Positions 7,427 to 54,300 of a DNA stretch of 64,000 nt are shown here, one piece after another (position 1 is the stretch's first letter; every line of letters begins with the position of its first letter). The position numbers and the translations under genes were made by a program. This DNA comes from Gekko japonicus (taxonomy: Eukaryota), in contig NW_015172565.1 of NCBI RefSeq assembly GCF_001447785.1, forward strand, positions 992,578 through 1,056,577, in the 5' to 3' direction. The notes below the pieces were generated by a model. The model ran no database searches. It saw only the letters and a program-made list of their open reading frames with translations, and was not told the DNA's origin.

Positions 7427-8299
7427 AGAGAAGGGACTGCATCATGTGACACAGAAAAAGCAGATGACCTGTACTGGCTCTTGACTTTGAACCAGTATGC
7501 AATGATGAAACATTAGAATAAGACACACAACCTGAGAATGCAGATTCTGAAGCAATCGTGCCAGAGATTCAGAGCAGTGCAGGTGTACTGGACAGCTCTG
7601 TAACAGCAGATGAAAATCCAAGACCATGCCTCTGATGCTCATTGTGACTGAACAAAGGCATTCTAACCTTCTGCTTGTCCTACTTCGCAAGGTCAGTGTT
7701 ACCATCTGAACTTTGTACTTCGGAGGAAATAGGATAGATGGCAACAACCAAAGCCAGTAGGTGGAAGAAGGCAGAACAAGAGGAGATTGATACTCTACAC
7801 AAAAATAAAATGTGGACCTTGACAAAGCTACCACTAGGAAAGAATCCTATTGGATGCAGGTGGGTGTTTAAGGTCAAAGAAGATGCTGACAGAAACGTGG
7901 AATGTTACAAAGCAAAATTAGTTGCTAAAGGCTTCTCACAAAAACATGGTACGGACTTTGATGAAGCCTTTGCACCAGTGGTGAAACATGGTACAATCAG
8001 ATTACTTTTGAGCATCGCAGGGTCCAAGAAGATGCATGTCAAACATCTAGATGTAAAGACAGCATTTCTTCATGGGGAGGTTCAAGAAGATCTGTACATG
8101 GAGCTGCCAGAAGGTTTTATAGACCCCAAACAACCAAATTTAGTCTGCAAACTGCAGACAGGGCTGTATGGACTAAAACAGGCAGCATGTGCCTGGAACA
8201 AAAAATTACATGCAGTGCTCATAGTGCAAGACTTCAAGCAAGGAGAAGCGGATTCATGTCTGTACACTAAACACAAAGATGGATATTGTACTTATATAC

Positions 8300-8940
8300 T
8301 GTCATGAGCTGGGCTGGGCCAGGAGGCAGAAGTCAGGTCCGGTCTGGGGGGGTCATAGCCAGAAGAGACAGAACGGGAGCCGAGTCAAGAGTCCAAGAGA
8401 ATATTCGTCTGAAGCAGGAGGTCAGAAGGCTGGAATCAAAATAGGAGCAAGATCTGGGAACAGGAACCGAGGGTGGGTGCAAGGTCAGCACGGATGCAAC
8501 TTGTTGCTTCCACAGAGAGCCCAACCCTGAGTGGGAGCTATACAGGCCTCTGGCAGTGCTTCCCTCAGTGATGGTGGCGCTCCTGTCAGTACTCAGGGCT
8601 CGGCACCCGCCTTCCCTACCAGAATGTGTCTCAGTGGCAGGTTGCTAAGCCCCTATGGAGCTGTTCCCTCAGTTGAGCCACCTGTGGAGGTGAATCAGGC
8701 GGGCTTTCTGTTTGCACATGTACCTTGTCGGCTCCTGCAGGGGGGATTTCTGTTTGCACCTGTACCTCGTCAGCTGCTGCAGGACCAGGTGCAGGGATTA
8801 CTGGCTCCGGCGCTAGTGGCGGCAAGCTGTCAACTCCCGAGGAGTCAGAGGAGCCAGCTTCCAGCTCTGGTGACACCAGCGACTCCGGCTGCACTGACAA
8901 CTTGGGCATGGGCCTGGCGCTGTCGCCACCGCCCATGACA
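8300..8940. mobile_element. Solo LTR (641 bp, family unassigned) inserted in the copia RT
   Basis: Termini TGTCATG...CATGACA; 5-bp TSD TATAC/TATTC; removing it restores copia TYILTYVDDL. Confidence 0.85.
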
Positions 8941-24346: not shown

Positions 24347-24873
24347 TATGTATGTGCACTCGCTAACATGCAAACAGGTCCATAGCTGCACAGTGACGTC
24401 CAGAAAATGGATCTGCTACATGGACTGGTCAGGCTGATGGTTGCATGGAAGGAGTTGGATCCCCGGTGGACAAAGCTTTACATCTATCAATAAATGTTTC
24501 CCTATTTTGGAAATGTATGGATATCTGCTGTCTGTAAAACTGAACAATAGATGTTCTTTTGTAATCTTACTGCCATTAACATGTTCTGGCTGATCCTGTT
24601 AAGTTAGTTACAGTGCAGACCCATTAAATCTTTATCTTACTAGGTAAAGTGCAGTGTCCAAGAACCGCCCCCTGTTCAAAGACGTCCAACTATAAAACAG
24701 CAAGGGGTGCGTGGGCGTCTTGGCTTTCAAAGTTTCAAGGACCAGCTTGAACAAAAGGAGCAAGGAGTTTCTCGGAGACTGGTGATGAATAAGGGAGAGG
24801 AAATTTCTGGGATGCCTCAGTGAAGATGCTAAACAATCTGTAGGAAACTCAAAAAGTGGGTAAAATAACAAGC

Positions 24874-24934
24874 ATGCTCCCCAACTACACCATTCTTGTT
24901 ATGGTCAGTCTGCACTGGTTCATAACCTATAGAC
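24874..24934 (+). CDS. Gene 1 exon: candidate signal peptide MLPNYTILVMVSLHWFITYR
   Basis: ATG to GTAAGT donor is 61 nt, phase 1, the same length as gene 2 exon 1; hydrophobic core; TATAAAA at 24691. Confidence 0.65.
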
Positions 24935-27900
24935 GTAAGTACAATTCTAATTAGCTTCTTTGCTAAGCAGATTGCACCTTGATTCTAAATGGTTTGGTGA
25001 ATGGGAATTCACCTGAATACAGCAAGAATGACTTGTACCTCTGTGTGTAGGGCTGTCATTCTATGCAAAATTACTTTGGGAGTCAGCCCCATTTACATCA
25101 AAGTAAATTATTTCCATCTGAGCAAAAATGTTAACTGGATTAGGCTGTAAAGCAGGTTCTTACCACTTAAGCTAGGACTGGAGCACAAACCTGTTTACTG
25201 TTCAACCTGGTTAAGAGTTGTTATGTGGGGTTTAAGATGATTTGTTGCCATTGTAATATGGCTGAAATTGGTATAGTTATTAGTTTGGTGGCTGGGCTAC
25301 AGGTCTTCAAGATGGTACGCTTTTCACATGAAAGATTCTGATTCATAAACCATTCTCAGTAAATAAACTGGCACAGAATGTGGGTACCTCACTTGCACAA
25401 GTGCAATCATGCCAAAGCTATGTGAGGTCTCCGCACACTTTCTACCATGTCTTAGCTTTTCAGTAACTTAAGTATGCTTGATGTATTCATAATTGCTTGC
25501 TTTCCTTTCTAGGCAATGATGGCAATGTTGCCATTGCAGATGCTTCAATAATTCCAGTTGGAGGTAAATGCTGAATGGGATGCATGGATGATTTATTTAA
25601 ACTTAACACAACACCCCCCTATCCCACTGGCATGAAGTAGTATTTCATTAAAAATAATCATTTGGACCAGAAGGATGTGTGGTGGCTGTAGATGTGTGAA
25701 CCCACCATTGCAATGCCTGCTGAAAGCCAAATCCTGCACATGGTGGTGCACACAATAAGTCTCTCTTTCTTTGGAGGCCACCTATGCTTCCACCTGGTTT
25801 TGTGATAAGGCTGTCTGAGTCATCTGATGACACTGGAAGCAGACTGGGATGGGCAAGAAGGAGATGTTCCCAAGGTTTCATGTGGCCAATGTGTGGAATT
25901 TGAATCAGGGTAACCACTTGGACACTAACATAAATTGATTTACAAAAGGTTATAGATTATTCTGGCCTGGCAGTTTGTGGTTGACACATTGTTATTCAGT
26001 TTTGTACTCCTAACCCTACTGCATTGTTCATTGAATATTTTATCCTGTATGATTACACTGTTGCTCATGCTGTCAATCTGTTTAGTACTTCTGATCCAAT
26101 TCGCACTGTTTATCAGATGTCCTGTACTGTATATTAGTCTTTTATCTTTTGTTCTTCTGTAATCTACCTTGAGTCTTAGTGGGAAAGATGGGCTTATAAG
26201 TAAGTTAAATATAATAAAATTTTAAAAATTCCCCGGAGCGAGTGGCTATTAGCACTGATCTCTGGACCTGTAGCTTCCATATTCAGAGACAATAAGCCTT
26301 GGAGTACTAGATGTTGGGAAGAACAAAAAATGGTGGATTGTTCTGTCCCACTTTATGCGCTGGAGCATCTAGCTAGCCACTGCAGAAGTAGAATACTCAA
26401 CTCTTGATTTTTTAGCTCTTATGGCCTTATGCTGCTACACATGTTTTCGTTTCTGCTCTAAATAAATTGTATTCTCTCTTCCTCCTATCCCAGATCCTAA
26501 TATAGCAGTGGGGAAAATATCCTCCCAGTCCAGCACTTTTGAAACAAAAGGAGAGTCCAGAAAGGGCGTAGACGGGTCTCTGGCACATAACTATGCTCAT
26601 GGCGATTGCACCCTGACACAGAAGGAATTTGAACCCTGGTGGATGGTGGATTTGATTTCGGCATTTCAGGTGTCTGCTGTGGTCGTCACCAACAGAGGAG
26701 ACTGTTGTGAATCGCGCATAAAAGGAGCTGAGATTCTGATTGGGGATTTGCCTGAGAAGGGAGGCACCATGAATCCCAGGTATTTGCCTGCTGCCTCCTA
26801 ACATACACATAAGCACAGTAATAGTGACTTGTTCTTAGTCCAACATTTAGTTCTAGGAGGGTGTATTTAGAATCTGTAATTTGGGCCCACTGACTAAATT
26901 CCAGTGCTCAAGATTTTTCATTTTCTCTTCTAAGAGCTGTCTATTTTAGACAACTTTACCTGCAGAAAATTTGCTGAGTAGTTCAAGTTCTGGGTAAGCA
27001 GCCTATGAATTTGCCTCAAGGCCTTAATAGCAGTTCTACGTGGCAAGATGGTTCAATGAATCTGTGAAGCATTTTCGCAAATGGCAATTTCTCCATGTCT
27101 TCTTCTGCACATTATTCTGTTTATTTGTGCTTTCCCCCCTTCTGTACTACTATTATTAAATACTAGTTTCCTTATAACAAGATTATTTTATTGATTACTG
27201 TTAATTTGAAGCTGTGTTATGGTGAACCAGACTACTTACTGGTCCATCTTGTTAAGTATTGTTGATTGACAGCAGCTCTCCGGAGTCTGCTACATTTGGT
27301 CGTTTGGATTTGAGATGCCCCTAATTGAATCTAAGGGCCAAACTAAATGTTACTGGAGTTGGGTCTGGATTTCCTGGACCCCAGTCATGTTCTCAGCAGC
27401 TACTGGAAACAGGCTCTTTAAAAGAGAGAGAGAGAGAGAGAGAGGGCTCAAATAGGATTGGAATGCAGGGGTGGAAAATGGTCAGTAAAATCAGTAAAAG
27501 TCAGTTTTTTTCATTTTGGTCAGTAATTTGTCAGTTTTTTTAAAAAATTGGTCAGTAAAGTCAGTATTTCTTTGATTCTTGTGAATGCAGTTTGTGTTTT
27601 TCTGTTTTCATTACTGCATTTTTGGGGAAACATGATGACTTCCCAGTGAGAAGACAGATTGTTTTCAGTGTAGTTATGAAGTACTTTAAGGACTTTGTTC
27701 CTAAGAGTAAAAGTGATTTGGTGAAATCTTCCACAGAGTATAGAAACATAACTAACCTCTTAAAACATGAGACAATGAAAGTAGAGGTGATGGATATTGT
27801 GGGATTCAACATGACACAGCTCATGCTAGAAGGAGTTGAGAAGAGGACAAGGGGGAAAAATGCTTGTGGATGCAGTGCAGAAAACTGTTGAGAAATGAAA

Positions 27901-30900
27901 GAGTTCATGAATAACTTTATTTATTCAATTTATACCCCACCCTCCCCGCCGGGGTGGGCTCAGGGTGGCTTATAAAGAGATTAAACATATAGGTAACAAA
28001 TTATATACAATCTTAAAACAAATAATAAAACTCTACATTATCATAAAGTGCTAGTAAGTGATCAGATACTTATAAGAATGCTTACAGAAGGCAGAACCGA
28101 TACTAGTGTTGTAATCAGATGATCTATATCGGTGGTCTTGGTCTCTATATTTAGGCAACAGCACAGGCTGTTGATGGTAAGCCAAGGACCAGGGCATTGT
28201 CACATCTCAGTTATTTGATGTTATTTGGTGTGGCTCCTTAGTCAAAGGCCTGGTGGAAGAGCTCCATCTTGCAGGCCCTGCGGAAATGTAAAAGGTCCTG
28301 AGGGCCCTGATCTCTTCTGGGAGCTCATTCCACCAGTACAGAGCTACCACTGAGAAGGCCCTGACCCTGGTTGTGGCCAGCCTGGCATCTTTAGGACCTG
28401 GGAGGCCAATTGATTTTGTGACCCTGAGTGCAGTGCTCTCTGGGGAGCATGTGGGGAAAGGTGTTCTCTCAGGTATGTGGGCCCCTGACCATAAGGGGCT
28501 TTAAAGGTAAGTACCAGCACCTTGAAGCGAATTCGGTATCCTATCGGCAGCCAGTGCAGTGCTTTCAGCACAGGCTGGATGTTGTCCAGCATAGGGAGGC
28601 CTATCAGAAGCCTGGCTGCAGCATTTTGTACTAGCTGTAGCTTCTGGATTTGGGTCAAGGGCAGCCCCATATAAAGAGCATTACAGTAGTCCAAACTCGA
28701 GGTGACCATCGCATGGATCACTGTCGCCAAGTTGTTGCATTCGAGGAAGAGAACTAACTGCCTAATCAGCTGGAGGTGGTAAAAGGCTGATTTGGCAGTG
28801 GCTGCTACCTGGGCCTCCATTGTTAGTGAGGCATTCAGGAGCACTCCCAAACTCCAAACCTCCAGCGCTGGCACCAATGGTGCCTCATTGAAGGTCAGAA
28901 GTAGGATCCCTGCCCTTGGGCTGCCCCAGCTCAGGCACAGGACCTCCGTCTTCATCGGATTCAGTTTCAGTTGGCTCAGTCTGAGCCAACCAGCTACGGC
29001 TTGCAACCCCTGGTTCAGATCTTCCAGTTTGAAGTCAGACTGACCGCCCAACGACAAATAGAGCTGGGTGTCATCCGCATACTGGTGACATCCCAGTCCA
29101 TGCCTCTGGGCAATCTGGGCAAGGGGGCGCATGTAGATGTTAAATAACATTGGGGACAGCACCGCCCCTTGGGGCACTCCACAAATCAGTGGGTGCTTTT
29201 GGGATAACTGCTCCCCTAGCGCCACCCTTTGTCCCCGACCCTGAAGGAAAGAAGCCAGCCATTGCAAGGCAGGCCCCTGGACTCCAGTGTTGGCGAGGCA
29301 GTGGATCAGTAACTAATGTTTGACCATGTTGAATGCCGCCAACAGGTCCAACAGCAACGTCACTGCCAATCTGCCCTGATCCAGATGCCTCCGGAGGTCA
29401 TCCGTGAGGGCGAACAGTGCCATCTCTGTCCTGTGGCCTGGGCAGAAACCGGACTGGAAAGGATCCAGAATGGAAGTGTCATCCAAAAAGCTCTGTAGCT
29501 GAATTGCCACAGCCATCTCAGTTATTTTACCCAAATAGGGCAGATTGGAGACTTGCTGGTAATTAGCCAATTCGGCCAGATCCAGAGATGGCTTTTTCAG
29601 GAGGGGACGAACCACAGCTTCCTTGAGTGCCCTAGGGAACTGTCCCTCCGAGAGGGACTTGTTGATAATCTCCCTTGGTGCATCTCAAAATCCCTCACGG
29701 CCAGTTTTAATTAGCCATGGTGGGCACGGGTCAAGGCAGCATGTAGTAGGGCGTACAGTTAAGAGCAGTTTGTCAACTTCTTCCAGGCTAAGCGGACTGA
29801 AATAATCCATAATCTGACTAAGATGTGCATGGAGCCTCGAGTTCACTTACTGTCTCAACTGTGGTGGGGAGGTCATGGCAGAGCGACAGGACTTTATCTG
29901 CAAAATAACTTGCAAAAGCCTCACAGCCTATATCCAATTCCTTAATATTTTGTCTGCTCTGTGGCAGAACAGTCATAGACCGAATTATTCTAAATAATTG
30001 GGCTGGGCATGAGCTCGTAGATGCAATCGTGGCCGCATAATACTCTTGACTGCCATCTCATAGGATCTCATAAATGTCCTACACTCTGTAGCCATCTTAG
30101 CCATCGCTTCATCAGCCGCAACTCCTGGGTAAAGCAAGGAGCCAGTCTAAAGTGAGGGCGCAGAGGGCGTCGGGGAGCGATCTCATTGATGGCTGCCGAG
30201 AGTCAGCTGTGCCAATCCTCCACAAGCTCATCTAATGAGCCACCAGGGGGCATCGGATCCCGCAGCACCATTTGAAGCCACATAGGGTCCATTTGGCTCC
30301 ATGGGCAAGCTGAAATCTGCTCACCACCCAAACAGGGTTGGGGTGAAACATCATGGGCCTTCAGGGCATGATGGTCTGACCATGGCACTGCTGAGGCAGT
30401 GACCCGGTCCACTGTGACTCCTGCCGCGAAGATCAGATCGAGCGTGTGCCCGGCCTGGTGAGTGGGAGTCATTATATATTGGGAGAGTCCCAGCGCCACC
30501 ACGGATGACACTAGGTCCATTGCCTGAGTGGAGGTTTCATCATCCGCATGGACACTGAAATCAAGCAGGACAATCAGTCTAGGGTGTTCCAGTGCCCAGC
30601 CCGACACGGCCTCCACCAGGGATGGCAGGCTGATGGCCGGTTCTTTTTTCATCAAAAAACCAAAGATAAAGTACAAGCAAAGACAAGTCTTATCTTACAG
30701 TAATTGTGTTTTGTTGTCATAATTATTACTTTATGTTTGGTTTTTAATATGTTTTTGCTGTTTTGCTGTTTTATTATCTGCGGTATGTGATTATTTTTAA
30801 AAGGGAATCTTTTTTTGCCTTGCATTTTGTACAATAATGAAAACATTGTCCTCTATTCTTAAAAAAATAAATAAAAAGGCGTTAAATCCTTTTATCTGGG

Positions 30901-33798
30901 TCACATCTAACTATGGGGCTGGCTATGGGGATGGTGGAGGCCAGATAATAATAATTTTTAATGAAGTCCTAGTTTTACATTTAAAACGCTAGCTTATAAG
31001 TAGGTTGATATTAAATTGTTCAGTAATTTGTCCTTTTTTGGTCAGTATTTGGTCAGGTTTTTTTTTTAAATTTTAGTCAGTAAAATCAGTATTTTTGACC
31101 CTTTGACTAGTTTCCACCCCTGGAATGGCACTGTGGGGGGAGGAAGTGCTCCTACCTCACCTAAGCCACACCAGGGAGAGTTATTTCTCTGGTTTTAGTG
31201 TTCCACATGCACTAATACTTCATGTGGAGCAGAAAAATCAGGGAAATGACCCCCCCCACCACCACCAGCATGGTTTTTGTGCAGGAAAATGGCTTGGGGG
31301 GAGATAGGAGCTCTTCTTCCCCCCATGGTACAGTTCTGAGACCATTGGGGCTCTTTCTTTTTTCAAAGAAGCAGTGCCCTGCAGCTCCTGTGTGGCTGCC
31401 GAAAGCATGAGTTGGGTCTAGATAACTTGGACCCAATGTTTTAAAAAACAATGCTTAGTTTGGCCCTAAGATCAGATCATTTGCATGCAAAGCTTGTATT
31501 CTACCCGCCTACAAGCTCTACACACAACCCCCCAAGTCATTATATGGCCAGGGACCAGCCTACCTGAGGGACCGCCTTTCCCCACATGTGCCCCCAAGAG
31601 CACTACGGTCTGGGACCCAGAACCTATTAGACGTACCAGGTCCACGGGTTACCAAATTAGTAGTGACCAGGAATAGGGCGTTTTCGGTGGCGGCTCCTAT
31701 CTGGTGGAACGAGCTCCCAGAGGAGATCAGGGCTCTGCGGGACCTAGCACAGTTCCGCAGAGCCTGCAAGACAGAGCTCTTCCGCCAGGCTTTTGAATAG
31801 GAGCCGCCACCGCCATTACACCATCAGTATACCATCATCACCATCTACGCCCTAAGCTAGTCGACAGGGTTACCGGATGTGGACACTTGGAAAGAGAACG
31901 GGACTTCTGACGGCCATCTGGCTTTAGGAGCCGAGCACCAATTGTTGTTTGTATGTATGATGTTTTAAGAGTTAATGTTATTTAATGTTTTTAATGTTTT
32001 TACTGTTTTACTACATGTTTCGGCGACATGCTGTGTAAGCCGCCCTGAGCCTACGGGGAGGGCGGGATAAAAATACAAATAATAAATAATAAATAATAAT
32101 AAATAACTCTCACATGGTCTGTCCATAGAAAGTGGTTTTCAAACAACAACTCCCTGCGAGTTTATATGGAGTTTCTCAGTGGGGGGAAGAATAAGGGCAC
32201 ACCGGCAGGCGTCTCTGAAACAGACAGCTTGCCTGTCACCACTAGCTTTCCTTGCACAATGCAGCTATGGAGCATGTTGGGCATATTCTATGGTGTGCCC
32301 CTCAGCACATAACGAGTAATGGTGAAGCCCAGCAAACAGAGCAAGCACCCTGCACGAGCCAAGTGTGTGACCTAGAACCTGCTTCAGAATAGTCTGCAAT
32401 GGCCGGAGTTCCATGGCAGCAGAGTTATTGTGGAAAGCTTCCTGCCAACTTGAACCACTGATTTTAAGAGTCTACCTAGAAAGCAAGATTGGAATGCAGC
32501 AGCACCTTAGAGACCAACAAGATTTTCGGGGCACAAGCTTGCAAGAGTCAAAGCTCCCTTCATCAGATACAAGTAGGAATAGAGATCCCTGAATCCTTAT
32601 ATCCCAGTCAGAATATATACACAAAAGGAGGAGGAGGAGGAGATTGGATTTATACCCTGCCCTTCACTACCCAAAGGAGTCTCAGGGCGGCTTACAAACT
32701 CCTTTCCCTTCCGCTCCCCACAACAGCCACCCTGTGAGGTAGGTGGGGCTGAGAGAGCCCTGACAGAAACTGCTCTTTTTCAAGGACAGCTGTGCCAGAG
32801 CTTGTGACTGACCCAAGGTCACATCAGCAGCTGCGAGTGGAGGAGTGGGAAATCAAACCCGGTTCTCCCAGATTAGAGTCTGCGCACTTAACCACTACAC
32901 CAAACTCAGATCTCCATTCCAACTGACAAAGGGAACTTTGACTCTTGAAAGCTTTTACCATGAAAATCTGGCTGGTCTCTAAGGTGCTGCTGGGCTTGTA
33001 TCTAGCTGTTCTGCTGCAGACCGACACGGCTACCCTCTGGAACTAGCCGGAAAGCATTAGGTTATCCTGGCATCAGCGTGGGTAGGGTTCACACACCTAC
33101 ACAGACCATGCCTTGGCTGTGCTCTGCTCTTTGCAACTAAATAATGGTCTTCTTCCTTGGCAGGTGTGCCACAATCAGCAGCATGGATCTTGGAGAAACC
33201 GTGACCTTTAACTGTGCGGGAATGCAAGGGCAATATGTGACCATTACTATCCCAGGGAGAAGGGAGTCCCTCTCCCTCTGTGAAGTGCAAGTGCTTGGAC
33301 ACCCGTGGCTTCACATAGGTGAGCAGATGGCCTGCATTCAGGATCCCCTGAATTTTACGTGCCTCTGGAGAACACGGTTATCAGCATGCAGGATGTACAA
33401 GGGCTGTGTTGCCTTTCCCAGTGCTGTAAGAGCATTAGGCTATGTACGGAATTTAATGGGCTTTGTACGTACACAACAGTTTGGCTGCTGTATACTGAAC
33501 CTGCTGCTATGAATACATTGTAACTAATAACAGAGAAATAATACAAGCAGTGGGTAGCTTCAGGGACTGCCATGAATGGTTGCCTGTTGTTGCCTGGGTT
33601 AAACAGCTGCCTCCAGTTATCATGTGATGCAAATGAGCAGCCGTTGGCTTGGTTACTCTGACAGTTTGTTAATCTTGATGGTGACACACAGCAGTAATCT
33701 AGTTTTAGCTGCAAAATGTACTTGATTTCTTGGAAACGTAGGCTGGAGCTGTACATAAATAGTTTTTTCAGAAAGCAGAGGCAGTATTGTAAAGCATG

Positions 33799-33840
<42 letters not shown>

Positions 33841-36800
33841 TTTTCAGACCAATTTTTCAGTTTTTGTAGTGCTTCAAGCCTGGAAATGATAAAACGAGAC
33901 TTGAGAGATGCAGCTGTTGTTGCCACAAGAGTTGTACATTCGCTATTGCAGGTGCCTATTGGTTAGTGCCCATACTCGTGTCACCAATGATTACATCTAG
34001 CACCCTTTCTCAAAGCCCACGGTAGTTTTAAAACTTTCTAATTTGCAGGGAAGGGGAATGGGTATTGCAAAGGATGCACGCGTAACCAGACGTTCAAAAC
34101 AGTGATGTAACCCTTTAAAAAAGGGTGACAAAGAATTCAGAACTATCCATTCACCTCACCTGTATGCTTCCATTTCCAGTTTTCTTTTCTCCTGAAAAAC
34201 ATCCTTCCCACTGTCCACATGCCCATGTTGCGTGCCTGGGCTAAATGCTTTATGCTCTGCTGTAGAGAGTTTGAATGCATGTGGGAACCCCTCCCTCCCC
34301 CGCAATGATGCACACTGAGCAAATCTCTAGCAGACTGAGAAGTACATGGCATGTTGTGCCTTGAAAAGACATGCCATTTGATGAGCTTTAGTTAAACAAA
34401 AAGAATTAAAATAGGATAAGGCATGAATGCCTGAAGGTCCATGGAGGCAGGTCACTGGTCTAGTGACTACTGGTCTAGTCTACTAGTGACTCTTGGGCAC
34501 AGATCTTTCCCAGGGCTGCAACTGGAGACACTTTGGTTGAAGTTGTGATTGGAGACCCTGGCAGTTTCCACAAGAAGGCATGAAGATGTGCCCCTGCCAT
34601 GGCAGCAACAGCAACCAGGGTGGGAACAAGTGGGAATTCTCCTGCAAAGATCTGTCCCTACTGCGCTTGCTGCTGGCCCTCACATCTCACTCCTCCCCAT
34701 TTCTCCACCGTGTCTGCACAAAAGTACAGATTGTGACAGCAAGTTCCCCCACAGCACAGACACCCCCTTTTCTTTCCCTTTTCACTCTTCCTGCCAGGCC
34801 GTGCTGTAATGCTACAGCAAGGCCCAACTGGGGAAGGAAAAAAGCCCTTTAAAGGGGTTGTAAAGGGGGGAAGAAAATGTCATTTGGAAGATGCAGCTCA
34901 CTGCAGCTCACTCCCTACTGTGGCTGTGGGCTGAGTGAGTGGAGTGTTGCGTGCCTCCCCCCCACACACACACAGTTTCCCCTCTGAGTTGTAACAAAGT
35001 AGGTTTACTTTTAATCTAGTTCAAGGGATGGAAATACTTTAAGGCCTTCCTGCTGCCTATGTGGGGGAAAAGGCCCATGCAGAAGCAGCCCCTATAAGAC
35101 ATGTGCTCTGCTGTGGAACTATGGAGGTGATGCCGCACCTCCAGGCTGATGCTGGCCCATGGCTTTGGGGTGGAGGGTGGGGGTGGAGGCTATGTTACTA
35201 TGACCAGAAAACTTCCAGATTGTCCAGAGGAATTATGCATGGGCTTAAGTGCTGTCAAGTTTCAACTGACTTACGTTGACCCCAGAAAGGGTCTTTCAAT
35301 GTAAGTAAGAAGCAGAGGTGATTTGACATTGCCTTGCTCTGCAGAGCCTTCCTTGGTGGTCTCCCATTTTATTTATTTATTTATTTAATTTTCTACTTAT
35401 ATACCGCTCTGACCCCGAAGAGTCTCTGAGCGGTTTACACAGCTGTTTATCCCTAACTAGGGCCACATTATTTGTATGGGGGGTGATAACCTACCAGCAC
35501 CCCGGCCACGGGCTCAGTTGCTATTCACTTCCTGGCTCGGCTTGTTGTTCAGTCCCTGGCAGCTCTTCTAAGTAATGACCCTGCTTCTCTTTCGAGATCT
35601 GAGGCGACTGGGCTGTACCATGTCGCATTCCCTGCCTCAGAGGAGTGAAAGGATTATGCAAGAAGCAACAATACATTTCCACATGAAAATACTAAAAACT
35701 TGGACTGTTGGGCCATTTTAGTGGTCACACAGGACCTGTCCCCATGGAGAAAAGGATGAGGCAAACAAATGAATCATTATATTACATGTAGGAGCTGGTG
35801 TTGAATCATGACTGAAAGAATGAGCTACGACCCAGGAGATCCCCAGCTGACATCTTGCCTCTGCCACAGACTCACGAGATGGCCTTAGACCTGCCAGTCT
35901 TTCTTAGCCTAAGCACCCCATCTCCAATATGGGGATGAATATACTGGCCTTAATACATGTGAAGTGCTTTGAACATGGAAAAGGGCTTATGTATACATTA
36001 GTATATCAGCAAAGTTAGAAATCAGCATTGGAGAGCGCTCTAAGCTGGTAAAGTCACTATCATTAGATGATGTTGCTGAATGATCTCTGGTTAGTTTAGT
36101 GCTCTTTCAGGACAAAGCCCAATGTCTCATAGTTGTGTCAGCCCTCAACAATAAATTTGGCCCAATTTTTCTTTCTGACATAGCTTGCTTCTCATGGACG
36201 GCAAATGTAGTATTTATTTAAGGTTGTGAGAGAGTTAGAAGCCCCCTAGGTCCCACAGAAAGAGGAAGACAGAGTAGTCGATGCTAGTGATTGAGAGAGA
36301 ATTGTCTTTGTTCCTATACTATCCATGAATTCAATTTCAGTCTTCACTCTTACTCATTCGTCATGTAATGCTGCCATCTTGTGGCTTTCCTTTGTTACAT
36401 AGCCCCAGCAGTGCTCTGAACTCACCTACACCAAGAAAAGGATACGTTCAATTCCTTGAACATTCCCCAGCCCATCTTTACCTTTTGCAGAAAAGCAGAT
36501 TCTCCAACCCTCAATTTAAATTGCCTTTGCTATATAATGGATGGGTTTAAAATACCTGTTCTGTTCTTCAGAAAACCGAGGCAAATGTGCACTTCATTTT
36601 TTTTTTAATGTATCCTGCCTTTTTCCTCAGGGGAGACCCAAAGTGGCCTGTCCACTGTATCCTCCCAACAACCACCCTGTGAGGTAGGTTAGGCTGAGAG
36701 AGTGTAATGGATGCGAGGGCACCTGGCAAGCTTCAGGAGCAAGTGGGAAGTCGAACCCTGTTCTCCCAGCTTGACTCATTAGCCGCTATGCCATGCTGGT

Positions 36801-39800
36801 TCTCAAAGAACTAAATGAGGAAACATTTATGAAGTTGGGCTGTGTTTGTTATTAAGCTGATCGTTTTCCATCTCTGTGGAGTGAGGGTGTAGCCTTGCTC
36901 ATATTTATGACTTTTTGTAACAGATGAGATGTGACAGATGTGATCAATAAATACATGGACTGTCACAGAGTGTTGCAGGGGTTGATGAGGAAGAGTGGGA
37001 GTTCTGTTGCTCATTGCTAGCGATACCACAGTGACTATTCAGTGGCCCCATGACAGATGTGCTACCTCATTCAAAAGCCCTGGAGAAAACACGTTCAGTT
37101 GCTTTTTGGTTTGGTCAAAAGATGTCAGTGGAATGAAGTTTTCCCTATTTCCCTGCTTTTGTGTGCTTTTTAAATAACTGAACATCCAACCCAATTAGGA
37201 GTTGTGGAGACCTCAAAAGCTTGCGTGCTGTTTTGTGGTATTTTGGTTACCCATATTACATGGTTTTGTTTTTGTATTTCTAGAAAAGTCTTTATAAGTT
37301 ATAGCTGATGCATCTTGGACCACGAAAGTCAGTGGGACAGCACAAAACAAAAGGTTACATTGTTAGATAATAGAACAAAGTCTGAGACCAATGGCACCTT
37401 TAACAGTCCAGTGGCATCAGTATGCACGCGAAAACGTATATCTAGAACTAAATTCTGTTAGTCTTGAAGGTGCCACTGGATTCAAACTTTGTTCTATTAC
37501 TTCAGTCCAACATGGCTACCCACCTGAATCTATTGTTTGATCATGTTTAGGACTGGAGTTCCAGAATCTATCACACAAAAAATGTTGGTAGTTTTAAAAA
37601 TCTGAGTATTACTTTACCCATTCAGTGGCTCCTATGCTCTGCCATCATTTGAGTGTTGAAATAGAAACAGTCATGATTTTAACCTTATGGCAGTTTCTCA
37701 AACTTTTCTCTGGGCCCATTCAATATAGCTTTGGGCAATTTTCTAAAAACAAGCATCTCCGGATGGCTTCTCCTTGTTTTCTGCTGTTATTTGGGGCTGA
37801 TATTTCTGGACACATTGGGCTGAATCTTAAGTACCACCAGTGGAATGAAGGCCACAGAGCAGGAGCTCCCCACATTTCCTCTCTTGTTATAGCCCACTAA
37901 AGCCCTGAAATTCTGAAAACCCCCGGAACAGGGTAGAAGCACAGATTGGGCAGTCAGGGGTGTGAGGGGGCTATTAGTAACCATTGCCTCCCTCCACTGC
38001 TATAATGTAATCACTGCTACACCAGTGGAGTGGCACCTTAGGTACCAATGCACTTGGTATAGCATCAGCCTACATGGTGAGCATGCTGCAGTATTCCTTG
38101 CATGTAGATGCTTCTGAGATAAGCTTAGGGCACCGTGCAAAGACCTTTTACATTAAAAGAGGAGTGGGTCAGGACATTTCAACCTCTTCCTAAGCTACAC
38201 AGGACATTTCAACCTCTTCCTAAGCTACACAGTAGAGTAGAGCTTTTCGTGAGCTCCTGTCTTCCCTGTTCGGGTTGGGATGAGGCAATACTGTGGGTAG
38301 GGCTGCCAAGTGGGGGCGGGGGGCAGGTAAACCCCCGCTTTGGAGGCCTGATTTCCGCCGCCGCGGAATCGGGCCCCGGGGGGAACTCTGCCCCCGAAGC
38401 GCAGCGTGGCTGCGTCACCAGAGGTGACGCAACCACGTTGATCACGTTGGGGGCGTGACCCCGATCGTTGGAGGGAAAACTCTATCGTTTTCCCTCCGAT
38501 GATCAGGGCCACGCCCCCAACGTGATTGACGTTGCGCGTCACTTCCGGGACATGCTAGTGGCGCGCGTGCGCTTTGTGCGTGCGCATCAGAGGAGAGCTC
38601 CCGGAGCCCGGCGACGCTCCCCCGCCGGTAAGGATATTCGACTTGGCAACCCTAACTGTGGGAACAGTCAGTCCTCTAAATCAAATCTGGTTTAGTGTAC
38701 TGGGGGTGGGGGATTCAAACCACCCAGTTCATGGCTGATGAAAGAGAGGCTCCATCTGCCTCAGCAGTCACCTTCTCCCAGGAACTTCATTCCTGATTAT
38801 CCCAGAACCTGTAGCCTCAGCCCCGCCCCCTGCCCCACAGTTTGGTTCTAGGGTTTAAAGCCCCACATGGCTTGGGACCAGGATATCTGAAAGGTTGTCT
38901 TCTCCCATATGTTCCTGCCCAGGAATTAAGATCACAGGGAGAGGCCCTCCTGACTGTTTCATCAACCAAAGAAGCTTGTTTGGTGGGTACATGAGAGAGG
39001 GCCTTCTCAGTGGCAGCCCCGCAATTATGGAACAACCTTCCCAGAGAGCTGCACTTTGCCTAAGGTTCCCAGACCCCTAGCAGGGGTGGGGCATTCCCAA
39101 CCCTGGCCCCTTGATCAACTGGCCGGTGTGTGTGTGTGGATGGGGGCTTACCAGCAGCAAACACAGCGATGTCACTTCCAGCACACACCAGACGTGATGT
39201 CATGTAAACGCTGATGCAGGACACTCTGGTATTTGGGCAAAAACTCTATGGTAAAAATTGACTTCTACCATAGAATTTTTGTCCAAATATCATCGTGTCC
39301 CCACATTGCCATCAACGTGATGATGTCGCTTCTGGTGTGTGCTGGAAGTGATGTCGCTGAGTCACAGGCAATGCTGGCCTAGGCTTCTCTGGGCTGCAAG
39401 AAAGTCCTCACCCAACTGCCGTTGGTTGCCATGGGGTACCTGACAACCTGATCCCCTCACTTTTGATCCTTAGGAGGCAGCTGGAGACAGTTTTATTTAG
39501 GACAACGTTTGATTAATTTACTAGCAGTCCTAAACTGTGATTGTAAATTTTGCAGTTTTATGTTTTTTATATTGTGCATTTTATCTCATAAACCACCTGT
39601 AGCTCCATGTGGAAGAAAGACGCCTAATATTTAAAATAAAATTCTGGGGCTTCTGGATCCCATTTTGAATAATTTACCAGGGTTAGAAGCACAAAAATGT
39701 CACTTGTTTCTTTTTTGCAGTTCATGATGGAGGGCGGAATCCCGTCAGAGATAGTGAAACTGATTTAGGTAAGAGCTTAGCTATTGCAGTTTTTTTTTTT

Positions 39801-40855
39801 TAAATCTCTTCAGCAATGCCAGCCTCCTAATATCTTTGCCTTGTTTATAATGCTGGAATTGTGTTATCGGTGTGAGTCTTTTAAGATGCCATTTCTCTAA
39901 GTAAATATTGGAAGAACGCTGTGTCAGGGTTGTGCAGACTAGCACTCTTGTTGAAAAGTTCAGTGATGTCCATCTGAGGGCACCTTTCACTCCCTCCTAA
40001 TATGAGAGGCACTTCCCCATCATGAGACCCCTTGCCCCCATGATATGTGTATGAATACACTTGAGGGTAGTGCCAGTTGCATCTCTCAGGGTCCCTTTGA
40101 CTCTATCGATTCTTGGTTGGGACAAAGCACAGCCGTCAGTGAACATTCAGTATGGAGAAGTGTGGACATGCATAAGGAATGGGTAAACAGCTGTGTTTTA
40201 CTATATTAAACGCTGATTTCCTGGAAGGGCCCTAAGGATCTTCTCTCTTCTAGGTCTGCAGGGCAGAGTACTGAGTTTTCTGAATGGATCGAGGCCTAGC
40301 TCCGTGGTCATGTCCCCGCTGCAACCTTTGAATCTGATGGAATTCACACTCTGCATGAGAGTGGCTGCAGAATATCTGGGTGAACAGAAAGCCATTCTCT
40401 TCTCCTACCACTCTCCCAATGATGAACTGAGAATCTTGCGTGAATCAAGTGGTCATTTTGGGTTGCACATGGGGGGGCGGAGCGTGATGTTTGCTCTCCC
40501 TGACCTCAGCCCTTTTGGGAGTCATTTGTGTGTGACCTGGGAATCCACATTTGGTCTTGTGAACTTTTGGATAAATGGGAAGCGGAGTATCAGGAAGATA
40601 TATAATGTGGGACACATTCTTCAGCCAGGGGGTACTGTGATGCTTGGACAGGATCAGAGTGCACAAACCATGTCTGAGAAGCAGAATCGACGTTTTGTGG
40701 GAGAAATAACCGATCTCTACATGTGGGATTATGTACTGCAGCCTCAGGACATTGAGAATGTTTTCCAGAAGCATGACTTTCCCAGGGGAAACATCTTTGA
40801 CTGGAACATCTTATCATACAAGATAAAAGGGGACGTGAGGGTACTGCCTAAGTAA
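24874..40855 (+). CDS. Gene 1: secreted F-type lectin (fucolectin)-pentraxin fusion protein, 6 coding exons, predicted 400 aa
   Basis: Exons 24874-24934, 25513-25563, 26494-26779, 33164-33318, 39721-39768 and 40254-40855 all have GT-AG boundaries and compatible phases (1,1,2,1,1) and total 1203 nt with no internal stop. Confidence 0.82.
25513..25563 (+). CDS. Gene 1 exon: 51-nt linker (NDGNVAIADASIIPVG)
   Basis: TTTCCTTTCTAG acceptor, GAG|GTAAAT donor, open in phase 1-1. Confidence 0.65.
26494..26779 (+). CDS. Gene 1 exon: F-type lectin domain, N-terminal part
   Basis: PNIAVGKISSQSS...GVDG...CTLT...PWWMVDL...TNRGDCCESRIKGAEILIG; 286 nt. Confidence 0.95.
27466..31122. mobile_element. Non-autonomous DNA transposon with 5-bp TSD, split by an L2
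   Basis: TIRs CAGGGGTGGAAA / TTTCCACCCCTG; GAATG on both flanks; clustered (G)TCAGT motifs inside both ends. Confidence 0.8.
27916..30640 (-). mobile_element. L2-clade LINE, degenerate ORF2
   Basis: Endonuclease remnant (THQAGHTLDLIF), RT (QSGF, GVPQGAVLSPMLFNIY, YADDTQLY), LHWLP motif and (ATAA)n-type tail. Confidence 0.92.
31540..32106 (+). mobile_element. L2 3' fragment
   Basis: RAFSVAAPIWWNELP...KTELFRQAF, GTAAGCCGCCCTGAG motif and AAATAAAT tail. Confidence 0.9.
32480..33045. mobile_element. Penelope-like inverted terminal fragments interrupted by a tRNA-head SINE (~32625-32906, minus)
   Basis: GCAGCACCTTAGAGACCA / TGGTCTCTAAGGTGCTGC inverted arms; the SINE ends in TTAACCACTACACCAAACT (reverse-complemented A-box head). 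Confidence 0.7.
33164..33318 (+). CDS. Gene 1 exon: F-type lectin domain, C-terminal part
   Basis: CATISSMDLGETVTFNCAGMQGQYVTITIPGRRESLSLCEVQVLG; CAG acceptor, AG|GTGAG donor; phase 2-1. Confidence 0.95.
33801..33837. repeat. (CA)n microsatellite
   Basis: About 18 CA units. Confidence 0.98.
38170..38232. repeat. Perfect 30-bp tandem duplication
   Basis: CAGGACATTTCAACCTCTTCCTAAGCTACA twice. Confidence 0.95.
38298..38654. mobile_element. GC-rich hAT MITE (TAGGGTTGCC family)
   Basis: TIRs TAGGGCTGCCAAGT / ACTTGGCAACCCTA; 8-bp TSD ACTGTGGG. Confidence 0.93.
38850..39640 (+). mobile_element. L2 3' fragment interrupted by a MITE-like insert (~39061-39450)
   Basis: AAAGCCCCACATGGCTTGGGACCAGG...GCCTTCTCAGTGGCAGCCCC...TGGAAC; resumes at ~39455 and ends in an AATAAA-rich tail. 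Confidence 0.65.
39721..39768 (+). CDS. Gene 1 exon: 48-nt linker (VHDGGRNPVRDSETDL)
   Basis: TTTTTTGCAG acceptor, TAG|GTAAGA donor, open in phase 1-1. Confidence 0.8.
   Translation, partial: FMMEGGIPSEIVKLI
40254..40855 (+). CDS. Gene 1 terminal exon: CRP/SAP-like pentraxin domain
   Basis: EFTLCM, pentraxin signature HLCVTWES, FWING, LGQDQ, FVGEITDLYMWDYVL, GNIFDW; whole domain in one exon, as in short pentraxins. Confidence 0.96.
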
Positions 40856-41041
40856 GAACGGCCGGGGGGGGGGGGAGATACGAGCATTCTTAGTGCCTTT
40901 GTGCAGCCAGCAGGCAAGGCTGCTATTTGTTGGCCTCCTAAGAAGTTCAAGGCACAGCTAGTGAACGACTTGCACTTATTATGTGATTATTATTCATATT
41001 GCACCATGGTATATCCTTGAATTAACAGTTTGAAAATATGA

Positions 41042-41047
41042 AATAAA
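41042..41047 (+). terminator. Candidate polyadenylation signal of gene 1
   Basis: AATAAA about 190 nt after the stop, followed by TG/T-rich sequence. Confidence 0.7.
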
Positions 41048-51380: not shown

Positions 51381-54300
51381 GTAAGCAGTCCCGTAGCCAG
51401 GATTTTGTGGCTTGCGGGGCAATTTTTTCTCCTGGTGGGGCTGCCATTATTTGCCATAATGAAGGGAGGTGGCACTAGGGTTGCCAAGTGGTCTTACCTT
51501 GCCCGGCGGGGGAGCCTTGCTGGGCTCCGGGAGCTCCTCGTTGGCGCATGCGCGCAAAGCGCATGCACACCACCAACACGTCACAGGAAGTGACATGCTA
51601 CGTTGTTCACGTTGGGGGTGTGGCCCAGATCGTCGGGGGGGGAACCATATGGTTCCCCCCCAACATCTGGGCCACGCCCCCAACATGAGCAACGTGGCTG
51701 ACGCAGCTTCGGGGGGCGGAGTTCCCCCCGGGGCCTGATTCCGCCACGGTGGAAATCGGGCCTCCGAAGTGGGGGTTTCCCCGCCCCCCGGGCCCACTTG
51801 GCAGCCCTAGGTGGCACGCGCCCCTCTCCCTCCCCTCCTGCAAGATTTAATGGGCCTTTCAGCTGACTGGTAGGCCATGTGCTCCCCACCAATCAGCTGA
51901 AGGGCTCTTTAAGTCTTGCAGGAGGGGATGGAGAGGGGTGTGCACCCCCCCCCCCGTTTCGTCTCAAAAGCATTTAAAGGATCCCTTTAAATGATTTTGG
52001 GAAGAAGGGGAGGCTTTAAGAAGCAGGGAGCCTTTAAGGAAGGGGGCAGAGCCCCCAATAGCCCCACCACCATAGCTACGGGCCAGGAGGTCAGTGTGAC
52101 TCTTATTTCCCCCTATTCTTCTTCTTCTTCCCCTATATTAACTTAGCTGAGAGAGATTCTTCTTTAGTAATTCCATCAAGCTAAAGGTGCATTTTCATTA
52201 ATTCCTGAATTGCTTTGTATACACACTTTGTATGCACCCCTCCCTTTCAGAATAAGGGGTAGCTTAAAACAACTTTAAAATACTCTACTACTGTTGGGAA
52301 TGTACTATAAGTCAGTGGCCATCATATTGTTGGGAAGCCTTTTTCTTGAGAACAAACTAAGGGTCATGCAATTTTAGGGCAAATCCTCAATCTACCTGTT
52401 TCTTATTAAACATAAGGGAATGTTTCTAACTTATAAATTCTACAAATGAGGGACCTGCAAGGACTTGCGGGGGGCATCTAATTCCTCCTCCCTCACAATA
52501 TCCTCTTTCCATTTCATGAAAGCCCCCATTATGTCTCCCCTTTTCCTGCTTCCTTCTCTCCTTTCCATCCTCTAGCCAACCTACCTTTATCTGCCCCGAC
52601 TTCAGCCTTCTTTCCTTCCCTTCCCCAGCAACATCTCCCCAGGAAACCTATGGCCCAGATCTGCAGTTCCAACTGTATCAGGGCCATTTGCACTGGGGGA
52701 GACCTGCAAGGACTTTTGGGGGGCACCTCACTTTTTCCTGGATGCTCTTTCCACANNNNNNNNNNNNNNNNNNNNNNNNNNNNNNNNNNNNNNNNNTTTC
52801 CCTACTTTCTTCTCTTTCACATCTACTTACCAATCTGTTATCCACCCACCCATGGGGCCCCAGGACAGCTTACATCATTCACCTCTCCTTTATTGTATCC
52901 TCACAACAGCTTGGTGAGGTAGGTTAGGTTGAGAATGTATAATTGGCCCAAGGTCACCCACAGAGTTTCCACAGCAGAGTGAGGATTTGAGGTCATAGTT
53001 TACTATGTTGCACTGGCTTTTGTGGGGTAGCTGCCATTGAACAGTAATGAGCAGCCAGGAATGGGTGAATCAAGCATTTTGGGTGGTATCAAGCTCCCTG
53101 GTGGTTAGGGTTCCCAAGTCCCCTCATTGCTCTGGCGGGGGGATTTGGGGGGCATTCCAGGGGTAGGCGGGGATGCCCCCAAGCCATGGCCACCTACAGC
53201 CACTCCTCTCCCTTCGCTTCTGCAGAGATTTAAAAGTCTTGAGCTGATCGGCGGGGAGCACCTGGCCTGTTGATCAGCTGGGGTGCCNNNNNNNNNNNNN
53301 NNNNNCAGGAAGGGAGAGGAGCTGGCAACCCTATTGGTGGTTGCTGCCAGGCCTCTCTTAAAGGCCAAAACAACCCTTCCCCCTCACCCCAATTCCCACT
53401 TTACGGTTCAGTGGGTGGGTGGGCTCCACGGGGGGATAGTAAGGACACCTGCACCCCCTGCCCAAATCCTTGATTACCAGCTCCAGAGGGGCAGGGAGGA
53501 ATCCTGCACCCTCCCTTGCCTGATTCCCTCCTTACTGGCTCAGCAGGACTTGCAGGGGGGAATCTCATGCCACCCCATTGCCTAACCTGTTGTGGCTCTG
53601 GGTCTTACCACCCACCATTAAGCTCAGCAGTGGTGCCTGGAAGCCTCTCCCACTGTTCTCTGCCATGACAGCCAGGCCCAGAGCCTTGCCCAGCATCTTC
53701 TGCAGTGGCAGCCAGGCCCAGAGCTTCATTCCCCACTTTTTTGATGGACCCATGCCCAGCACGACTCCCTGGCCTGCATCTCTGCTGCTGGCGGGCCTGG
53801 TGTGGGTCCTAGGCTGTGTCACCAAAGCCCAGTGTGGCTCCCGGGGTTCAGCAATGGTGGTATGCCCAGCACGGCTTCCAGGCTCCGCCAGCAGTGGCAT
53901 GCTCACCACGGCTCCCAGGCTGTGCAGCCTCTGCCGGGCCCAGTAGAGCCCTGGGCTGTGCCACCACTGGGCCCAGTGCAGTTCCCAGGCTGTGCGACCA
54001 CTTCTGTAAGTACAGATACTGCTACTTTACTTTTCAGGGGATTTAAACCCCCCTATATATATTTTTTAAATTTGCAGATTTTTCTGCAAACCTGCGGAGT
54101 GCCCCAGGTTTGAAGAAAGATCTATTTAGCATCCACATGGCCCTGATCCACATATTTAGCTATCTGTAGATGGGGCCCACAGTGGCTAATAGTGTATAGA
54201 CAAGTGGGGACCTACAAGAAACATGTAGGGTAGCTACCCCATTTCCTCCACCTTTGCTTCTCCCCCTCTCCCCCACCTCTCTCACCCCCTTTCTGCCTTC

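Follow-up and report, generated by a model that had tools for sequence, protein, structure and literature searches.

The Gekko japonicus window, a 64,000-nucleotide stretch of genomic DNA, contains an intact six-exon gene that fuses an F-type lectin domain (FTLD) to a pentraxin; this observation is confirmed at the level of the gene model. The gene is most probably the gekkonid orthologue of the squamate 'pentraxin fusion protein(-like)', with a 400-residue product whose ligand is likely to be bound non-canonically. Such a gene is already known, and the lectin–pentraxin fusion, reportedly recognized since Seery et al. described the pentraxin fusion protein PXN1 of Xenopus laevis in 1993, is a textbook case for the literature on F-type lectins.

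Gene structure

The six plus-strand exons have canonical AG/GT borders, matching phases and acceptors with pyrimidine-rich tracts (Table 1). Spliced together, they form a frame of 400 codons followed by a TAA stop (40853-40855). The inner codons, read exon by exon, include no stop, and neither do the five split codons (CGC, GAT, AGG, GTT and GGT). Borders, phases and split codons are all consistent with the six GT-AG exons and open 400-residue frame proposed in the preliminary description, whose TATA and AATAAA elements were found as claimed and whose junctions 33318/39721 and 39768/40254 occur at those positions in the genomic sequence. Exon 2 was absent from that description and was placed via a gecko orthologue: 54 candidates of all lengths include three spanning 51 nt, and of these three it is the one with a translation matching 'GNVAIADASIIPVGD' of the orthologues.

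Domain and orthologue searches were run exon by exon rather than on the joined 400-residue protein. Exon 1 can be aligned with other squamates, and its identity to the N-terminal part of the Eublepharis and Euleptes models is 72-86%. Its hydrophobic N-terminus is a presumed signal peptide. Two features count against the model: this leader lacks a basic n-region, and three short upstream ORFs (ATG at 24785, 24812 and 24826) lie between the TATA box and the start codon, in the presumed 5' UTR. The protein is thus predicted to run from a hydrophobic leader and short linker through an FTLD (exons 3-4) and a 16-residue linker (exon 5) to a C-terminal short-pentraxin domain (exon 6). The order first proposed, signal peptide–linker–FTLD–linker–pentraxin, is supported, with the signal peptide presumed.

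Table 1. Features of the lectin–pentraxin fusion gene, in window coordinates
Feature	Position	Strand	Evidence or remark
TATAAAA box, candidate promoter element	24691..24697	+	Read directly; 177 nt 5' of start codon
Exon 1, start codon and hydrophobic N-terminus, 20 codons + 1 base	24874..24934	+	Donor GAC/gtaagtac
Exon 2, 51-nt linker exon, phase 1 to phase 1	25513..25563	+	Acceptor ttcctttctag/, donor GAG/gtaaatgc
Exon 3, FTLD part	26494..26779	+	PF22633, FBP32 and eel agglutinin matches
Leu codon CTG replacing fucose-triad histidine (eel agglutinin His52)	26613..26615	+	HMMER alignments
RGDCCESR, retained R-x-D-x4-R of fucose motif with adjacent cysteine pair	26694..26717	+	Alignment
Exon 4, FTLD C-terminal part, 51-residue piece	33164..33318	+	Gecko/snake, turtle and caecilian alignments
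Exon 5, 16-codon linker (..HDGGRNPVRDSETDL..)	39721..39768	+	Conserved in 11 of 12 aligned squamate models
Exon 6, complete pentraxin domain and TAA stop	40254..40855	+	PF00354 over profile 2-194/194
Pentraxin signature HLCVTWES (H-x-C-x-S/T-W-x-S)	40523..40546	+	Alignment
Calcium-site loop DQSAQTMSEKQNR replacing canonical DQDxxxxxF[D/E]xxQ	40652..40690	+	Aligned to human SAP, CRP
GT of consensus-like 5' splice site CCTAA/GTAAGA, overlapping stop codon	40852..40853	+	Read directly
AATAAA, candidate polyadenylation signal	41042..41047	+	Read directly; 187 nt 3' of stop

F-type lectin domain

Exon 3 matches PF22633 at 2.4e-13 (51 bits, cut-off 27.8) and, among PDB entries, striped bass FBP32 (3cqo, 3.3e-37) and eel agglutinin AAA (1k12, 2.2e-19); its identity to gecko orthologues is 86-90%. 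Exon 4 is 96% identical to four gecko models and 77% identical to a snake, and aligns with the C-terminal third of FTLDs in turtle, caecilian and frog proteins; searched alone, this 51-residue piece gives no Pfam score. The FTLD and pentraxin domain matches are far beyond chance, and by sequence the domain belongs to the FTLD family. It shares with AAA and FBP32 the cysteine framework, R-x-D-x4-R and the DG cation motif: cysteines occupy the equivalents of AAA 50, 82-83 (the CC pair), 108, 124 and 146, preserving the disulfide framework, and the cation motif h2DGx is present as GVDGS (AIDGS in orthologues). Unlike these two proteins, the window protein has a leucine in place of the triad histidine and carries a single domain, fused to a pentraxin.

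The fucose-binding motif consists of a histidine followed by R-x-D-x4-(R/K), with the basic triad His52/Arg79/Arg86 in AAA (PMC5712786). HMMER alignments place 'CTLT' of the window opposite 'CTHT/CTHS' of 3cqo and 1k12, and leucine takes the histidine position in every squamate row (13/13, as CTLT or CSLT). The canonical motif is therefore incomplete in the window and likewise in all 13 squamate rows, its RGDCCESR half being present and its histidine replaced. Judged by these residues, the window FTLD is a member of the fold family rather than a canonical fucose-binding site.

Pentraxin domain

Exon 6 aligns with PF00354 at 8.3e-39 and, in the PDB, with zebrafish CRP over its full length (4pbo, 5.8e-50), human SAP (1.5e-33) and human CRP (2.9e-28). 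The domain is full-length, with the pentraxin signature and the conserved cysteine pair (Cys in FTLCMR and Cys in HLCV). The canonical calcium ligands, Asp58, Asn59, Glu136, Asp138 and Gln148 of SAP and Glu147 of CRP, are not conserved as a set. Aligned to 1gyk and 1b09, SAP Asp138 is replaced by Ser, CRP Glu147 by Lys and SAP Gln148/CRP Gln150 by Arg; SAP Glu136 becomes Asp, and the 58/59 pair is Asn-Asp. The loop is non-canonical in all squamate rows and canonical in 23 non-squamate rows, from turtle, amphibian, fish, shark and mammal.

Zebrafish CRP (4pbo/4pbp) and the teleost 'CRP-like' pentraxins, which include the closest solved structure to exon 6 and fall into the same tree clade, differ from the window protein in having no lectin domain and a canonical calcium loop. 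A three-copy complex prediction for the pentraxin exon gave scores of 0.14 and 0.09, the mark being 0.32, and is evidence neither for nor against an oligomer.

Squamate orthologues and the extent of the gene

RefSeq models of this gene exist in at least 14 squamates, as the preliminary description had guessed of automated annotation, and the locus is an ordinary gecko orthologue of a gene that many lizard and snake annotations already contain. All of this orthologue evidence consists of automated predictions, not cDNA. The window model is colinear with predictions of ~400 residues in ten non-gecko squamates and with residues 1-400 of two gecko models (Eublepharis XP_054843720 and Euleptes XP_056702516). 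Predictions of like order, 373-409 residues long, come from Crotalus, Notechis, Thamnophis, Erythrolamprus, Candoia, Zootoca, Elgaria, Tiliqua, Pogona, Varanus, Sceloporus and Pantherophis. The full models (398-409 aa; for example Notechis scutatus, Crotalus tigris isoform X1, Zootoca vivipara and Pogona vitticeps) share with the window a leader, a linker, one FTLD, the 16-residue linker and a pentraxin, together with CTLT/CSLT and an altered calcium loop. A twelve-model squamate alignment is colinear, with no indel inside either domain and few residue differences in leader and tail; the exon 5 linker is kept in 11 of the 12 models and missing from that of Sceloporus.

Divergence from these models is at the species level only, with 74-94% identity in the pentraxin exon. 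The closest relative is a partial Gekko kuhli protein (93.5% over that exon), followed by Eublepharis and Euleptes (88.6%), Sphaerodactylus (85.6%) and snakes (74.5%). Annotations conflict in places: Zootoca, Naja and Gekko kuhli have models with the pentraxin alone, a Sphaerodactylus model is truncated, and two geckos have read-through models. The gecko proteins end in ..VLPK-stop, with splice-donor-like sequence over the stop, whereas other squamates have at least one extra residue before it.

This ending raises the question of whether the stop is spliced out through CCTAA/GTAAGA, a good match to the donor consensus, and the mRNA continues into a downstream multi-FTLD gene on the same plus strand ~17 kb away, giving an FTLD-pentraxin-FTLDx4 protein as the main or a minor isoform. 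The RefSeq models of Euleptes (1024 aa) and Eublepharis (1644 aa) follow this course, being colinear over residues 1-400 and then continuing into four FTLDs that match window positions 58103-62854, and the Euleptes pentraxin junction reads '..VLPN/CS..', as the donor predicts. In the window, however, the donor leaves two bases where the first downstream FTLD exon (start 58110) needs one, so a direct join would be out of frame. The AATAAA shortly past the stop also argues against a longer transcription unit, and the Eublepharis model inserts ~590 low-complexity filler residues between its parts, a usual mark of merged predictions. None of the ten non-gecko squamate models extends beyond the pentraxin, nor does Sphaerodactylus X1, and the downstream FTLDs fall into a different clade of the FTLD tree. 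We therefore regard such a longer unit as improbable.

Considerably less probable is that the locus yields two separate products, FTLD-only (exons 1-4) and pentraxin-only (exon 6), with the fusion an artefact of gene prediction. Long inter-domain introns (6.4 kb and 0.5 kb) and the pentraxin-only models of Zootoca, Naja, Protobothrops and Gekko kuhli (208-225 aa) would fit two products, but these short models start in intron-derived or linker sequence, and species that have them also have full ones, such as the 402-aa model of Zootoca. Exon 6 has neither a start codon nor a leader of its own, its first in-frame ATG (40310) falling within the domain, and exon 4 stays stop-free to its end, leaving the phase that exon 5 requires. 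Exon 5 is itself conserved (100% identity to Sphaerodactylus, 94% to Gekko kuhli), and even the Gekko kuhli model carries it, attached to the pentraxin exon. Finally, the fused arrangement is an ancient one, shared by turtles, all three amphibian orders and Xenopus.

Comparison with amphibian and turtle fusions

The single-chain fusion favored above has the likeness to the Xenopus protein claimed in the preliminary description: at the level of the gene model, FTLD and pentraxin share one open frame with the lectin first, the same one-chain order as in PXN1. Xenopus PXN1 and the fusions of Rhinatrema, Rana, Bufo, Ambystoma and Chelonia likewise combine N-terminal FTLD(s) and a C-terminal short pentraxin. 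The amphibian and turtle proteins have two to seven FTLDs, in contrast to one in the window, and their pentraxins, only 41-51% identical to that of the window, keep the canonical calcium loop that the latter lacks. The FTLD adjoining the pentraxin retains the triad histidine in turtles and most amphibians, whereas that of the window has leucine.

Phylogeny and the squamate stem

Separate trees, as the preliminary description had advised, place both domains in tight squamate clades. In the pentraxin tree, from which the partial Xenopus PXN row was omitted as too short, this clade has support 100/100, and its stem measures 0.66 changes per site, against 0.02-0.13 for the branches inside it; in the FTLD tree its support is 99 and its stem 0.35. 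Squamate, turtle, amphibian-fusion, lungfish and teleost CRP-like pentraxins form one clade (98/95), outside which fall mammalian SAP, a frog CRP-like protein and shark rows; in this tree the window pentraxin is orthologous to the amphibian and turtle fusion pentraxins. A quick FTLD tree groups the squamate FTLD with the His-less first domain of turtles (support 94), while an AU test did not reject its placement among pentraxin-proximal FTLDs (p 0.22).

A strict search for residues fixed differently in squamates versus all others passed only 3/199 pentraxin columns and 3 FTLD columns, which goes against a single fixed new squamate motif. Squamates differ among themselves in the calcium loop, and the histidine is also missing from many amphibian FTLDs. 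With so few fixed columns and a variable loop, the site changes look like the loss of an old constraint and the gain of a new, looser one. Residues that maintain the fold persist across squamates: every cysteine of the lectin domain, the CC pair among them, and its DG calcium motif, as well as the signature and cysteine pair of the pentraxin. We also searched intron 4 (33319-39720) for remains of a second FTLD since lost. Turtle and caecilian fusions used as tblastn queries gave E values of 0.5-4 only, and an FTLD profile run on stop-free pieces reached 0.26 at best, a value that control regions matched; the idea of such a relic was rejected.

That the gene is decaying, with an open frame and no function, as the lost histidine, the three replaced calcium ligands and the upstream ATGs in the leader might suggest, is the least credible reading of all, given that the replacements are common to geckos, skinks, lacertids, anguimorphs, iguanians and snakes and so date to the squamate stem, that the frame, the splice phases, the cysteines and the majority of other residues have been preserved from then on, and that the window's end branch in the pentraxin tree is short (0.044).

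Function and significance

For the intact orthologue, secretion into a body fluid would be expected from the occurrence of a turtle relative in plasma. The pentraxin domain would assemble the protein into a cyclic oligomer with one lectin domain per subunit. This could be a trimer, as reported for zebrafish CRP (PMC6503050), its closest solved relative, or a pentamer, which is not to be assumed in view of the zebrafish trimer. With leucine at the triad histidine and three calcium ligands replaced, a canonical fucose- and calcium-dependent reading becomes doubtful, and the ligand probably binds in a non-canonical manner. The idea of working fucose lectins arrayed on a pentraxin ring is weakened accordingly by the same losses in every squamate copy. 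These replacements appear to have arisen on the long squamate stem branch and to have been conserved afterwards, a pattern that favors an altered or calcium-independent specificity over decay.

A fuller scenario can be offered tentatively, at somewhat less than even confidence. On the squamate stem, a fusion with two or more FTLDs may have been cut to one His-less FTLD and its pentraxin calcium site concurrently rebuilt, after which the protein remained nearly unchanged throughout the squamate radiation, a soluble oligomer for a new calcium-independent, non-fucose ligand. In the same scenario, and with the same reserve, the Asp, Glu and Gln ligands may have given way to Ser/Gly, Lys/Gln and Arg/Pro.

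The preliminary interpretation thus stands in part: its gene model, domain order, Xenopus likeness and expectation of existing annotation hold, and its premise of novelty does not. F-type lectin domains, which it described as long considered absent from reptiles, birds and eutherians, were reported in reptiles, birds and monotremes in 2015 (Bishnoi et al., as cited in PMC5712786 and PMC12221842). As a gene discovery the locus adds little, being the expected orthologue of an annotated squamate gene. Some value lies in a clean, checked gecko exon model, as existing gecko models are either cut short or fused to the adjacent gene. Specialists may gain more from the comparative result, loss of the histidine and three calcium ligands in every squamate copy: since the canonical residues are lost, assays assuming calcium-dependent phosphocholine or fucose binding may fail for the squamate protein. 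Within the literature library searched we found no study of this protein, and according to reviews no reptile has yielded an isolated CRP-type protein (PMC6503050, PMC13242370). If the scenario is true, squamates would possess a recognition protein for a new ligand, in a group from which no pentraxin has ever been isolated.

Gene model and domain architecture

The pentraxin fusion gene was rebuilt one exon at a time, and domain searches were likewise run exon by exon. At every exon the acceptor is AG, preceded by a pyrimidine tract, and the donor GT. The inner codons contain no stops when each exon is checked separately, and the five split codons are CGC, GAT, AGG, GTT and GGT; the frame spans 400 codons followed by TAA at 40853-40855. 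We chose linker exon 2 among 54 frame-keeping candidates (30-120 nt; three of 51 nt) on the strength of its translation, which agrees with 'GNVAIADASIIPVGD' of the gecko orthologue P0071. The TATA box and polyadenylation-type AATAAA were read in the sequence where the preliminary description had placed them, at 24691 and 41042. The interval from TATA box to start codon contains three short upstream ORFs, and a G run of about 12 nt (40860-40872) directly follows the stop in the 3' UTR.

Profile searches recovered both proposed domains, with exon 3 matching PF22633 (2.4e-13) and exon 6 covering positions 2-194 of 194 of the Pentaxin profile (8.3e-39). Among solved structures, exon 3 matches striped bass FBP32 (3.3e-37) and eel agglutinin (2.2e-19). 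Exon 4, by itself below a workable length for Pfam, is 96% identical to gecko orthologues and aligns with the final third of lectin domains in turtle and caecilian fusions. Exon 6 matches zebrafish CRP (5.8e-50), human SAP (1.5e-33) and human CRP (2.9e-28). The presence of an F-type lectin domain (FTLD) and a pentraxin in the gecko gene is confirmed. At the gene-model level, the intact gene and the architecture first described from the sequence hold.

A single open frame codes for a hydrophobic leader followed by one lectin domain, a conserved linker and a pentraxin. The product would be secreted, and the pentraxin domain may drive ring assembly with one lectin domain per subunit. Zebrafish CRP, the closest solved relative, is a trimer according to PMC6503050.

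Features of the fusion gene, its neighbour and the surrounding window
Feature	Position	Strand	Basis or note
TATAAAA	24691-24697		upstream of fusion gene start
Exon 1	24874-24934	+	sequence and previously proposed junctions
Exon 2	25513-25563	+	51-nt linker exon; match to P0071
Exon 3	26494-26779	+	sequence and previously proposed junctions
Exon 4	33164-33318	+	sequence and previously proposed junctions
Exon 5	39721-39768	+	sequence and previously proposed junctions
Exon 6	40254-40855	+	sequence and previously proposed junctions
AATAAA	41042-41047		downstream of fusion gene stop
FTLD exon pairs, neighbouring gene	58110-58396, 59488-59643, 62222-62509, 62714-62854	+	
Non-LTR retrotransposon remnant	28344-29267 and 30203-30676	-	intron 3, antisense
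Perfect (CA)18 microsatellite	33801-33837		intron 4
Perfect 30-nt tandem duplication	38170-38232		intron 4
LINE ORF2 fragment	3884-5980	-	698-aa ORF; endonuclease PF03372 and reverse transcriptase PF00078
Ty1/copia-like element	7738-8307	+	189-aa ORF; PF07727 RVT_2, 1.4e-50
Two N runs	52756-52796 and 53288-53305		within neighbouring gene span

Orthologues across Squamata

Evidence on orthologues comes entirely from automated gene predictions. An exon search identified a Sphaerodactylus townsendi 'pentraxin fusion protein isoform X1' with 85% identity to the pentraxin exon, and cluster look-ups gave Gekko kuhli as the nearest relative (93.5%), along with Eublepharis macularius, Euleptes europaea and Pantherophis guttatus. 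Searching with the Pantherophis protein returned predictions of 373-409 residues, most named 'pentraxin fusion protein-like' and with both Pfam domains present, from Crotalus, Notechis, Thamnophis, Erythrolamprus, Candoia, Zootoca, Elgaria, Tiliqua, Pogona, Varanus and Sceloporus. We aligned 12 squamate proteins with the six window exon peptides, entered as separate fragments. The peptides run colinear with these proteins over their whole length, first methionine to last lysine, and neither domain contains an indel; gaps are confined to a few leader or tail residues and the exon-5 linker, which is absent from the Sceloporus model. This colinearity identifies the window gene as the gekkonid member of an orthologous group annotated across Squamata. 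Its single lectin domain distinguishes it from the longer turtle fusions, with two or three, and from caecilian, salamander and frog fusions, with 2-7.

Gene boundaries and the neighbouring lectin gene

RefSeq models from Euleptes (1024 aa) and Eublepharis (1644 aa) carry four more lectin domains beyond the pentraxin, all matching a neighbouring gene (window 58103-62854), as if the fusion transcript continued into this multi-FTLD gene. The last codon and stop (AAG TAA GA, 40850-40858) do form a consensus-like 5' splice site, AA/GTAAGA, so that the stop overlaps a good donor (CCTAA/GTAAGA), and the equivalent site is apparently used in both gecko models to merge the genes. However, this donor leaves two bases, one more than required by the first lectin exon downstream (58110 onward), and a direct join is therefore out of frame. 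With an AATAAA after the stop, about 590 residues of filler in the Eublepharis model and all non-gecko models ending at the pentraxin, we regard such a read-through isoform as improbable. Separate lectin-only and pentraxin-only products are also unlikely, given that exon 6 has no start codon or leader of its own and that the short Gekko kuhli model, too, has exons 5 and 6 joined.

In the neighbouring gene, exon pairs encode at least two further FTLDs. These carry the canonical motif (CTHT and R-x-D-x4-R), share 76-92% identity with domains 2 and 3 of the read-through models from Eublepharis and Euleptes, and belong to a squamate multi-FTLD clade distinct from the fusion-gene domain. The neighbouring gene extends towards the window end. 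Elsewhere, the retrotransposon remnant in intron 3 retains a 307-aa ORF that matches reverse transcriptase (PF00078, 2.8e-16); a Pfam search with its second ORF returned no match. The copia-type reverse transcriptase is a strong match in a reptile genome.

Ligand-site residues

The fucose site of F-type lectins, according to PMC5712786, is a basic triad formed in eel agglutinin by His52, Arg79 and Arg86. In the window the triad histidine is replaced by leucine (CTLT versus CTHT; codon 26613-26615), with RGDCCESR, the adjacent cysteines, the other cysteines and the DG cation motif retained. Leucine occupies this position in 13 of 13 squamate rows. Unlike squamates, turtles, Xenopus, Bufo, Leptodactylus, Ambystoma and Rhinatrema keep the histidine in the pentraxin-proximal FTLD, whereas Rana and Dendropsophus models lack it, as squamates do. 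In the turtle fusions (P0244 from Chelonia, P0243 and P0253), the first full FTLD resembles the gecko domain in lacking the histidine (CSQT), and in sea turtles the first arginine is also missing (TNQG); the pentraxin-proximal FTLD of all three proteins is canonical. Since His-less FTLDs are numerous within multi-domain amphibian and turtle fusion proteins, such domains are not rare in themselves.

In alignments of the window pentraxin with human SAP and CRP, the Asp, Glu and Gln ligand positions are occupied by Ser, Lys and Arg. We take these to be SAP Asp138 (now Ser), CRP Glu147 (now Lys) and SAP Gln148/CRP Gln150 (now Arg). Every squamate row deviates at the three calcium-ligand positions, with some variation among lineages, whereas the canonical calcium loop is present in all 23 turtle, amphibian, fish, lungfish, shark and mammal rows. 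Because the histidine and three calcium ligands are lost, canonical fucose binding and calcium-dependent phosphocholine-type binding are both doubtful in the gecko protein.

Domain trees and constraint

In the careful pentraxin tree, the window sequence pairs with Gekko kuhli (100/93) within a squamate clade (100/100) whose stem measures 0.66 changes per site and whose inner branches measure only 0.02-0.13. A wider group (98/95) unites squamates with turtle and amphibian fusions, lungfish and teleost CRP-like proteins, and excludes mammalian SAP and a frog CRP-like protein. A quick tree of 88 lectin domains places the squamate fusion FTLDs in one clade (99, stem 0.35) that groups with the His-less first turtle domain and monotreme lectins (94), apart from the pentraxin-proximal domains. 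The alternative of a placement with the pentraxin-proximal domains was not rejected by the AU test (p 0.22), so squamates may have kept either ancestral FTLD. A search of intron 4 for a relic of a second FTLD found none.

The long stem and short branches, together with an intact frame and intact structural residues, argue that the fusion gene underwent a single change and was constrained thereafter, a reading drawn from protein trees. A decaying gene is unlikely, because the altered sites are common to all squamates and everything else is retained.

Relation to known lectins

A description of a lectin-pentraxin fusion from Xenopus appeared in 1993, and F-type lectin reviews treat it as a standard example. 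These reviews also credit Bishnoi et al. (2015) with finding FTLDs in reptiles, birds and monotremes (PMC5712786, PMC12221842). The premise that reptiles were thought to lack F-type lectins is out of date. Our literature search found no paper on the squamate pentraxin fusion protein itself; reviews state that a CRP-type protein has been isolated from no reptile (PMC6503050, PMC13242370). The gecko gene, conserved in squamates and annotated there already, is of a type known for a long time. Two points of modest interest are the squamate-wide loss of canonical ligand residues from both domains and the inconsistent gecko annotations at this locus.
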